This document shows positions 27,095 through 29,379 of a DNA stretch of 64,000 bases, one piece after another. Where the stretch lies: assembly GCA_964187785.1 (NCBI GenBank), contig OZ076414.1, positions 29,016,001-29,080,000 of the forward strand, in the 5' to 3' direction. The first letter of the stretch is position 1, and each line of letters begins with the position of its first letter. Below the pieces are notes generated by a model. The model did not search any database. It saw nothing but the letters and a program-made list of their open reading frames with translations, and was not told the origin of the DNA. The stretch is from Amphiscolops sp. MND2022 (taxonomy: Eukaryota). The translations under genes were made by a program, and so were the position numbers.

Positions 27095-29379
27095 ATGTCT
27101 CAAGTTGCTTCATCTACTTCAACTGCTTCACAGCAGAGAAAAGTTCAATGTGGAATATGTGATGCTCACATCCATAAAAACTCCATCCAGAAACACCAAA
27201 AACAGCACAATTTGACAAGTGCTGAGGACAGGGCCTGTCTTCGACAGTGGTCAGTCATAATGGACTTGGGTTTGGAAAGGGCCAAGGAGCGCAAACGAGA
27301 GCTTTCTAATGTCACCCACGAGCATGTTAGCAAGATACGCCGAGAACTAACGAAAGTTGGCAAGTATCAAGCTGTTACGGCCCAACAATCTAGCGTGACA
27401 ACTACTACTGCTGCTGCTGCTACTAGTAGTAGTCAAGATGTTTCTGATCCTCCTAGTAGGATCAGAGTATACGTATCTCCTCGAAGGCGACAACCTGGTG
27501 GATATTGGTCCAGCAACATTGGACGCTTTGCCGAACTGTACAAAGAGTATTGTACAGATGAGGCTGGTTTGTACCTAGCCGAATCAAATGTGCGAAATCA
27601 CATGTCCATTTTAAAGAAAATGGAGCGTGCAAACCCTGAGGCAGATGACATCACACAATTGTTCACGCCGCAAACAATTGATGCCATGCTGGTTGGAACA
27701 CATCAAACTGTGCTGCAGAACAGCACCAGATATGATTATCTGCTAATTTTAAAGGTTAGCAATTTTTCACTGTCAGACTAACTTTCCCTGATTACACTGA
27801 AATTAGACTAATTAGTCTTTAATTATTTCATCTTACACTAATTATACCTTTATTGCAATAATTCTAACCTCATTTGTGATGTTTAGACTATTGCCCATAC
27901 GGCCTACTTAAAGTGCGGCTACCAAACAAGTCAGCTGTTTTCAAGCCAGTTGAACGATGCCCTGCGTCGATATGGACGACGAGCAAAGTCAGATAATGTT
28001 GCCAAGAAGGTGGCACGGATTGAGAGGGTGGTTTCAATGGCACCCAACTTGGCTATGATGTTGAGCCAAAGTACCCTAGACAAAATCAAACAATCTCCAT
28101 CAAAGTTAGTTTTACTAATTTTATGAGATCTCTGTTGTTACTTCATTAATGTTTGTGGATCAATCAGTTTGCAATAATATCATATTGTATTTTAGACAAA
28201 CAAAGTTACGACGTTTGTTTGCACGTATATACGTGAAGAACCCACTGAGATTGGAAACCTTCTCCAATCTATACAAACACGAATTGATGAAAGTCAAGGA
28301 CTGTGTCATCAATGGAGAAGATCTCAAAGTGGTTGTTATTGCACGTCATAAGTCCGCGTGGAGCATTGGTTACGGTCACTTCTTTATGAGCCACGAGGAA
28401 GCAGAGATCTGGAAGGAGTGTTTGAGAGATCTCGGGCCAGACGATACTGTGTTTCCTTCCGCGAAACAACTTGGTAAAGATGTGAAAAAGGTTACAATCT
28501 TAGATCATTATTTTGTAATGTTCACTTTGTGACTTGGTCGTAACATCTTGTTTTGCTATAGATCTTGTACCACTTGTGCAGAGTCGAATGTGTCACTGTG
28601 ACAGATCTGCGAGTATCCGTGGAGCAGCAAGTTGGTGTGACACTGCCAGCTGAAACTGCAGCATTCATGTTGCACTCCGAAAAGTCAGTATGATTTGAAT
28701 TTAGATAGTCGATTTTCATGTTTATACTAACTTACCCTGAACGTCCCTGAATTTTAGACTAACCAGTTTAGTTAGTCCACGTAGTGAAACATGTCTTGAA
28801 TGATTGGTTCTGATATTTAATGGAATTACCTGATATTTCAGAGTAGCCCGACAGAATTACAGGGAGGGCACTCATATGCAAACAGCCGGCATCGCCTTCT
28901 TAGCTTACCAGAACCTGTTACTGAATGATCCCCTTGCCAAGAAAGACGTGAGTTTCTTGAGAAACTGTCCGAAGTGCCATAATCAGGTAAAAGTGAAAGT
29001 GGAAGGACAGTCAGTGGATCTGTGCCTACCTGGTGCTGAATCAGAGAGTGATCAACTTGCAGTTGATGTTCACACTCTACAACCTGACGAGGAGATAGTG
29101 TCAGAAAATGAGAATTTAAATGACGATTTTATGCAAGAAGAGTCGGATGTAAGTGGCGAGGATCTGATGGCTCCTAATAGCTCATCAGATGATGAAATTC
29201 CCAGACGAGTCACTAATGAACTGACATCTACTCAATACGATGAGTTGGAACAAATGTCCCCTGAACTTCTCACGCAAAGCGTCTTTACATTTCCTTCTCA
29301 AGTTGCTGGTGCTAGTGCCAATTTGAATCCTGATAATTTTGCTGTTGATGATGATGCTGATGATGATGATTCCCTTTGA
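27095..29379 (+). CDS. Spliced tyrosine recombinase, ~610 aa; predicted exons 27095-27754, 27887-28104, 28196-28490, 28562-28683, 28842-29379
   Basis: All four introns are GT...AG and the phases join into one 1833-nt frame. N-terminal C2H2 finger (CGICDAHIHKNSIQKHQKQH). YR motifs in the expected order: NPLR, VIARHKS...G, TDLRVS, MLHSEKVARQNY. CPKC motif and acidic tail. Confidence 0.82.

Follow-up and report, generated by a model that had tools for sequence, protein, structure and literature searches.

The stretch of DNA analysed here, called the window, comprises 64,000 nucleotides (nt) of contig OZ076414.1 (positions 29,016,001 to 29,080,000, forward strand; assembly GCA_964187785.1) from Amphiscolops sp. 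MND2022. It contains a ribosomal DNA (rDNA) unit with a split 18S gene; the break falls close to Rfam model position 427, within the universal sequence GGCA/GCAG (here and below, a slash marks a junction). The two halves of the 18S gene are separated by two copies, arranged head to tail, of a 4.4-kb unit (26071-30491 and 30492-34814; 99.5% identical), whose only gene has five exons and probably encodes a very divergent tyrosine recombinase; the other open reading frames (ORFs) of the unit are short or lie antisense within the exons. At the left junction, the 18S sequence ..GGAAGGCA passes into TTAGGCGCGCAGACTAAC; the two copies meet as GACTAACAGCGCGCCTAA / AAGGCA / TTAGGCGCGC; and at the right junction GCGCGCCTAA is followed by AAGGCA and then by GCAGGCACGG.., which belongs to the 18S gene. 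The hexamer AAGGCA is therefore present once at each chromosomal flank and exactly once between the copies, and the 10-bp terminal inverted repeats are perfect. The gene is identical in the two copies, introns included, and the non-coding arms differ by 3 single-nucleotide polymorphisms (SNPs), by the length of a (GA)n tract and by a 72-bp indel. No reverse transcriptase and no long terminal repeats (LTRs) were found in the element, nor was any DDE transposase, either as an ORF or as a Pfam match.

A preliminary description of this DNA, made from its letters, had proposed that a gene was hidden on the + strand at 27095-29379 behind fragmentary ORFs. The ORF list indeed gives three sizeable pieces, of 228 amino acids (aa; 27095-27781), 127 aa (28149-28532) and 167 aa (28876-29379). 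Joining five exons at four GT/AG introns, all with AG acceptors (Table 1), yields 1,833 nt, a length divisible by three, and a 610-aa protein with consistent phases and no internal stop, as had been proposed. Intron 4 cuts codon K432 2+1, and for this reason the motif MLHSEK/VARQNY is present only after splicing; the earlier statement that a catalytic motif is assembled across this intron is thus borne out, and in L010, a decayed copy that comes from a third sample and has 42-58% identity, the equivalent MLHSER/GARQNY is likewise split by an intron.

The five-exon model is well supported by comparative data. The paralogue L001b (L001:6001-8215) is an intact 600-aa gene, 59% identical to the window gene; its four introns interrupt the same codon positions, in phases 0, 2, 0 and 2 and with canonical GT..AG ends. 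Between these two genes the proportion of synonymous differences (pS) is 0.84, which is saturated, against 0.27 for nonsynonymous differences (pN); all five exons are therefore coding and under purifying selection. In L010, the donors of introns 2, 3 and 4 have kept both position and phase, and three diverged relatives share the intron positions. In tblastn searches with the five exon peptides, every copy displayed the same five blocks separated by unalignable gaps. The intron 3 donor, GTTACA, had been flagged as weak in the preliminary description; the paralogues have GTTGGT or GTTAGT at the same codon boundary, and nearly all donors across the gene family carry T at +3 (GTTAGT, GTTAGC, GTTGGT). 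The reading that there is no gene, and that three ORFs and a set of GT/AG sites align by chance, can appeal only to the lack of RNA evidence; the five-block structure is shared, at 42-74% aa identity and in unchanged phases, by at least four further copies, and pN is far below pS, so that this reading is already refuted and retains practically no probability. On the transcript side, no support for expression or splicing was obtained. A library search restricted to RNA-Seq listed no run for the locus, and the four sequencing runs that hold the locus contain 0.91-0.97 of its words, introns included; because the introns are held too, these runs are DNA or unspliced and are uninformative on splicing.

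The element belongs to a small, previously unnamed family with many copies outside rDNA. A search with exon 1 retrieved paralogues at 57-62% identity in an ENA assembly, which represents the same genome as the window because its loci L025 and L026 are 100% identical to the window. In this genome, contig ctg183454 carries a ~35-kb array of diverged, mostly decayed copies with no rRNA nearby. The array lies between same-strand ERAP1_C (L009:1801-2454) and Peptidase_M1 (L007:13890-14378) ORFs, which correspond to the C- and N-terminal parts of an M1 aminopeptidase, and probably sits inside an intron of the aminopeptidase gene. One copy on this contig is 96% identical to the window element and is frameshifted in exon 3. 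This copy interrupts exon 1 of an older member of the family (L001:660-712), its 3' end is deleted, and its 6-bp left flank, TGCGTA, is the reverse complement of TACGCA, the spacer of a second subfamily. In that second subfamily, the junction between two members reads ..GACTAACAGTGCGTCTAA / TACGCA / TTAGACGCAAAGACTAAC.., and its arms, GTGCGTCTAA / TACGCA / TTAGACGCAA, display the same layout with another spacer and with two arm substitutions mirrored on both sides. A phmmer search with exon 3 against 1.84 billion proteins returned eight matches only, all of them fragments from three assemblies. The most distant usable relative, P0009 (215 aa; 37% identity to exon 3, E 6.5e-9), is contiguous through the catalytic region. 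In the P0009 group (L003:5000-10800 and L004; another sample), partial copies, some of them intron-free, form tandem arrays; there the reading frame continues from the C-terminal part of a unit into the N-terminal part of the unit that follows.

All the motifs quoted in the preliminary description, NPLR (R311), RHKS (K345), TDLR (R408), MLHS (H429) and QNY (Y438), are found in the spliced frame. The five residues are conserved across the family, whose alignment keeps NPLR, RHKS, xDLR and LHS..QNY. R311, the candidate first arginine (Arg-I), lies in NPLRLET and is conserved in all family members, P0009 included, and the motif of K345 reads RHKS in the window gene and QQKT in P0009; one pseudogene copy has E at this position. 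The R408-to-Y438 spacing is 30 in the window subfamily and in P0009, and H429 lies 9 residues from Y438. Both distances are close to those of lambda Int, XerD and Cre. The assignments of TDLR, LHS and QNY are based on motif spacing and family conservation.

The spliced 610-aa protein was used in local comparisons only, and the library, PDB and folding tests were run with exon pieces, exon 3 or P0009. Against a 46-member Cre-family profile, hhalign with the spliced family gave a single match, which placed R311 on Cre R173 and K345 on Cre K201 (P 0.0038 with the full-length query, 0.0024 with the catalytic region). The score of this match was 28.5, in comparison to 14.1 ± 2.4 in column shuffles (maximum 24.7; 0 of 200 reached the score); the match is weak, covers Arg-I and Lys only and is the sole profile signal. 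Language-model neighbours in Atlas fall in the recombinase clan for 8 of the 10 best named hits of exon 3 and for all 10 of P0009 (PF00589, ResT-TelK, DUF3504, NDC10_II, Integrase_1/2 and Phage_integr_3) and are, by the tool's own warning, leads and not tests. The best reading of the five-exon gene, on indirect evidence, is a probable, not proven, tyrosine recombinase of a very divergent kind. Of the earlier identification, Arg-I and the Lys are backed by Cre register and conservation, and the C-terminal residues by conservation and spacing; the library models and the C-terminal profile alignment failed to support it.

These failures, together with one substitution in the HxxR box, weigh against the identification. 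Neither the exon pieces nor P0009 matched any model in Pfam, PHROGs or NCBIfam, even at lax E-values; this negative is weak for the window gene because the exon pieces are short, but P0009 is contiguous and was also negative. Exon 3 and its profile gave chance matches only among PDB sequences, and AlphaFold2 returned unusable models for exon 3 (mean predicted local distance difference test (pLDDT) score 44.8, 10 sequences) and for P0009 (42.3, 11 sequences). With hhalign, no alignment was obtained to a 15-member profile of lambda-Int-type phage integrases (P 0.21), nor between the C-terminal half alone and the Cre profile (P 0.07), and the scores of the family hidden Markov model on real recombinases were not separated from those on shuffles. 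The position of the His in the HxxR box is occupied by T405 in the window gene, by N in the paralogues and by K in P0009, and the box reads (T/N/K)D(L/I)R across the family. The wording 'HxxR with His replaced' was therefore correct as a description, and since T, N or K occurs depending on the member, this position is not a conserved catalytic residue here. In type IB topoisomerases a Lys occurs at the same position, and the superfamily is thus compatible with the missing His. A low-confidence alternative from hhalign, with HSEK as the HxxR box, was rejected because it leaves neither subfamily with a conserved Tyr at an appropriate distance.

Mobility at the DNA level is well supported, because the introns are retained in every copy. 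In agreement with what the preliminary description had argued, intron conservation, purifying selection, the intron-bearing tandem copies and the junction of inverted repeat, 6 bp and inverted repeat all point the same way. Recombinase sites consist of inverted repeats around a crossover region, or spacer, of 6-8 bp that also occurs in the target (PMC3212892); in both subfamilies the site is laid out as inverted repeats around a 6-bp core, and in the window this core is common to the target. The head-to-tail joint of the window, a 10-6-10 arrangement, has the form expected of a circle junction or of an attP-like core site. The canonical right half-site of the 18S gene (Rfam consensus), GCAGGCGCGC, resembles the element arm TTAGGCGCGC at 8/10 positions and here reads GCAGGCACGG.

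We consider it likely that the locus as a whole is best explained by an intact spliced gene for a tyrosine recombinase, carried as the sole cargo of a 4.4-kb inverted-repeat element. Such an element would leave its site as a circle, and its joined ends would form the 10-6-10 core site. The recombinase would then exchange strands in the 6-bp core against a chromosomal site with the same 6 bp, here 18S GGCA/GCAG, and integration would duplicate the core; a second integration, or a dimeric circle, would yield the head-to-tail pair. The circular intermediate and catalysis by Y438 are steps that we infer, and expression may proceed via a conserved acceptor 10 nt before the ATG.

Inverted repeats with a 6-bp flanking repeat fit a DDE cut-and-paste element as well, which weakens the case for a recombinase. 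On that alternative the gene would be real and conserved without encoding a recombinase, serving as zinc-finger DNA-binding or regulatory cargo, and a DDE transposase acting in trans would recognise the 10-bp terminal inverted repeats and make 6-bp target-site duplications. It would account for terminal inverted repeats combined with a 6-bp duplication, the classic DDE signature, and for a protein that matches no curated recombinase model, yielded no usable fold model and was negative with the lambda-Int profile and in the C-terminal-half comparisons. We nevertheless judge it unlikely. Two independent tandem joints, AAGGCA in the window and TACGCA in L001, each hold exactly one 6-bp unit, an arrangement that is easy to explain by circle recombination at the core and hard to explain by DDE transposition. 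Moreover, no ORF but this gene is conserved in every family member, the gene is under purifying selection, its Arg and Lys fall in Cre register above all 200 nulls, its language-model neighbours belong to the recombinase clan at the rates given above, and the element has no DDE-like ORF.

The second alternative is that the unit is immobile, a segmental tandem duplication in an orphan rDNA copy whose gene is a domesticated or decaying remnant and inactive. Only one locus with the 18S insertion is known, and its rDNA unit is heavily invaded, which tells against a mobile element with this target: the unit holds a reverse-transcriptase element in its 28S gene and is flanked by LTR-retrotransposon integrases, no repeated independent insertions at the same rDNA position were found (L025 and L026 are this very locus), and most other family copies are pseudogenes. 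Immobility is very unlikely all the same. Both copies in the window are intact, with identical 610-aa frames, and the duplication is very recent because they differ by only 3 SNPs and two indels. The inverted repeats and the single core mark the exact boundary of the duplication, and the subfamily has moved recently, since the 96% copy lies at an unrelated locus. As to the target, strict 18S specificity would rest on one locus and on the 8/10 resemblance between arm and half-site, and most family copies lie outside rDNA. The features of the element and its gene are collected in Table 1.

Table 1. Features of the element, its five-exon gene and the interrupted 18S gene in window coordinates.
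Feature	Position	Strand	Remarks
18S rRNA, 5' part	25628..26070	+	Rfam SSU_rRNA_eukarya model positions 4 to ~427
Left AAGGCA core/target repeat	26065-26070	+	Last 6 nt of the 18S 5' part
5' terminal inverted repeat, copy 1	26071..26080	+	TTAGGCGCGC; 10/10 complement of 30476-30485
5' non-coding arm	26081..27094	+	9 GACTAAC/GTTAGTC sites; 165-bp internal repeat 26407-26570
rDNA matches of 26650-26923	19138-19211, 21262-21333, 21908-22054, 22624-22708, 23184-23333		
Conserved module 5' of the ATG	27029..27084	+	GACTAAC..CCTGA..GACTAATTAGTC, then pyrimidine tract and AG; kept in L001b, L001c, L002
Exon 1	27095..27754	+	aa 1-220; C2H2-like finger, Ser/Thr/Ala-rich linker, most of SAM-like core-binding-type domain
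Intron 1	27755..27886	+	132 nt, phase 0, GTTAGC..AG; holds GACTAAC module
Exon 2	27887..28104	+	aa 221-293
Intron 2	28105..28195	+	91 nt, phase 2, GTTAGT..AG
Exon 3	28196..28490	+	aa 293-391; candidate Arg-I R311, candidate beta-hairpin Lys K345, VFPS motif
Codon of R311	28248-28250	+	
Codon of K345	28350-28352	+	
Intron 3	28491..28561	+	71 nt, phase 0, GTTACA..AG
Exon 4	28562..28683	+	aa 392-432; TDLR box (T405, R408) and H429
Codon of R408	28610-28612	+	
Codon of H429	28673-28675	+	
Intron 4	28684..28841	+	158 nt, phase 2, GTCAGT..AG; separates H429 from Y438; has GACTAAC/GTTAGTC sites
Exon 5	28842..29379	+	aa 432-610; candidate nucleophile Y438, CxxC (C474, C477), poorly conserved acidic tail
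Codon of Y438	28858-28860	+	
Stop codon of the five-exon gene	29377-29379	+	
3' non-coding arm	29380..30475	+	13 GACTAAC sites; 165-bp repeat copies 29645-29807, 30272-30426
Head-to-tail junction (10-6-10)	30476..30501	+	GCGCGCCTAA / AAGGCA / TTAGGCGCGC; AAGGCA at 30486-30491
Element copy 2	30492..34814	+	Exons 31516-32175, 32308-32525, 32617-32911, 32983-33104, 33263-33800
Right AAGGCA and 18S rRNA, 3' part	34815..36199	+	AAGGCA at 34815-34820, then 18S resuming GCAGGCACGG

The protein had also been credited with added DNA-binding modules, and this claim holds in part. The C2H2-like finger, C19-x2-C22-x11-H34-x3-H38, is kept in all paralogues, L010 included, whereas of the 'CPKC' motif only the CxxC is conserved (C474 and C477), with no conserved partner ligands. 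The Atlas neighbours of exon 1 provide weak leads to SAM-like N-terminal domains (Phage_int_SAM) and to QRICH1.

Upstream of the gene, the conserved module listed in Table 1 ends in an AG acceptor (27083-27084), which precedes the ATG by 10 nt in the window copy itself and by 10-17 nt across the window copy and its paralogues. The module is kept 5' of the ATG even in paralogues whose synonymous sites are saturated, and the acceptor is a candidate trans-splice or 5'-untranslated-region (5'-UTR) acceptor. In the acoel Symsagittifera roscoffensis, 30% of genes are trans-spliced (PMC9911081); the published spliced leader of this species is absent from the window and from the family loci. Downstream, a G+C-rich hairpin with a perfect 14-bp stem and a T run (29592-29636) lies ~210 nt past the stop codon, and neither AATAAA nor ATTAAA was found within 420 nt of the stop codon.

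The element has 25 occurrences of the heptamer GACTAAC or its reverse complement GTTAGTC, which is donor-like, and the window has 59, versus ~8 expected; none lies in an exon. L001 holds 72 such sites versus 1.6 expected, and the motif is enriched wherever the family occurs; it is absent from the P0009 loci. Sites are retained in introns 1 and 4 and not in introns 2 and 3. We examined ACTAAC as an intron branch point and rejected it as the whole explanation, given that the sites are far from acceptors and that most lie in the non-coding arms. The GACTAAC sites are possibly accessory binding sites for the zinc finger. Each 177-bp unit of a tandem array in the rDNA spacer also holds one GACTAAC.

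Within the 5' arm, ~270 nt of the element (26650-26923) are 86-94% identical to a spacer motif, in three repeats, and to the sequence upstream of 18S (matches in Table 1), and the second subfamily (L001:5618-5767) also has the second part of this segment, at 82% identity. The segment is either a captured promoter of RNA polymerase I (Pol I) with external transcribed spacer (ETS), or the spacer contains old element debris. A more ambitious proposal, which we regard as rather unlikely, sees here a new superfamily-level lineage of eukaryotic tyrosine-recombinase elements that lives in rDNA, with a gene adapted to this niche through a Pol I promoter/ETS, trans-splicing and intronic arm-type sites. 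In that scheme, the region upstream of the gene would contain a duplicate of the Pol I promoter/ETS of the host rDNA, and spliced-leader trans-splicing at the acceptor 10 nt before the ATG would cap a Pol I or read-through transcript. The zinc finger would use the GACTAAC sites of the arms and of introns 1 and 4 as accessory (arm-type) binding sites, which would give the introns a second role within the recombination site.

The surrounding rDNA unit is occupied by other elements as well. A 1,132-aa reverse-transcriptase ORF (RVT_1, E 1.6e-28; 45833-49231, +) interrupts the 28S gene (42789-50404) as an R2-like occupant. ORFs for LTR-retrotransposon integrases (Integrase_H2C2 and rve) flank the unit at 30-1904 (+) and 59502-60641 (-), and their presence on both sides gives the unit the appearance of an orphan or array-edge copy. 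An Rfam tRNA call (50352-50423) at the end of the 28S match adjoins 824-bp direct repeats (50427-51827) and a run of N (52051-52179). Tandem arrays are formed by 358-bp units in internal transcribed spacer 1 (ITS1; 37128-39933) and, in the spacer, by 189-bp (19596-21218) and 177-bp (12884-13890) units.

In animals, DNA transposons with a tyrosine recombinase are seldom found and have been little characterised, and it is usually difficult to delimit their ends. Here an intact gene, perfect termini, the core, a tandem joint resembling a circle junction and the co-varied arms of a sister subfamily are all seen, which would make the element a good system for a biochemical proof of Crypton-type transposition. 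No Pfam, PHROGs or NCBIfam model detects the protein family, which standard annotation therefore overlooks. Builders of genome-integration tools could also take an interest in a compact eukaryotic recombinase that has a defined 26-bp site and a natural landing site in universally conserved rRNA sequence.

We call the element a new Crypton-like DNA element, the relation to Cryptons being one of description and anatomy. It resembles Cryptons (Goodwin et al. 2003; Kojima and Jurka 2011, PMC3212892) in that its sole gene probably encodes a recombinase and contains introns, and in lacking a reverse transcriptase. The terminal direct repeats of Cryptons measure 4-6 bp (PMC3212892), and those of this element, AAGGCA, 6 bp; 6-bp terminal direct repeats have been taken as recombination substrates there, with a circular intermediate proposed, and the Atlas neighbours of the present protein include the Crypton-related DUF3504 (score 0.89) and NDC10_II, as a lead only. 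By contrast, Cryptons are described without terminal inverted repeats, and this element has perfect 10-bp ones beside the core. Its protein matches no library model and carries an N-terminal C2H2-like finger without a GCR1_C domain, and the element has a dense GACTAAC array and sits in 18S rDNA.

A further likeness, drawn from their description and not from sequences, concerns the telomere-repeat- and 28S-specific recombinases of endogenous nimaviruses and decapods (Kawato et al. 2023, PMC10871703), which share the order of C2H2, SAM-like and recombinase domains, retain the key residues partially (5/7 there), are multi-exon in some cases and target multicopy repeats including rDNA. Those recombinases, however, belong to giant viral genomes (200-300 kb) in crustaceans, and their targets are 28S or (TAACC)n, whereas here a 4.4-kb element with a single gene occupies 18S.

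Among rDNA elements, the non-LTR retrotransposons of the R1/R2 type, the 28S piggyBac Pokey, and Dada (PMC3706591, PMC8869645) likewise find a safe place to land in a multicopy RNA gene; they do so with a reverse transcriptase/endonuclease or a DDE transposase in place of a recombinase, and the target here is 18S GGCA/GCAG. Reviews of target-specific DNA transposons list Pokey (28S), CryptonV (microsatellites) and Dada (small RNA genes) (PMC8869645, PMC3706591), and we found no recombinase element inserted in 18S rDNA in the literature searched.

With Cre/loxP, XerCD/dif and Flp/FRT, the element shares the arrangement of an inverted repeat, an asymmetric spacer of 6-8 bp and an inverted repeat, in its own case 10-6-10, as well as the Arg-I and hairpin Lys in register with Cre and the H-to-Y distance of 9. 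The dif site is 11-6-11. In contrast to these systems, the protein has no significant similarity in its C-terminal half and lacks the His of HxxR, and it is encoded by a eukaryotic, intron-bearing gene.

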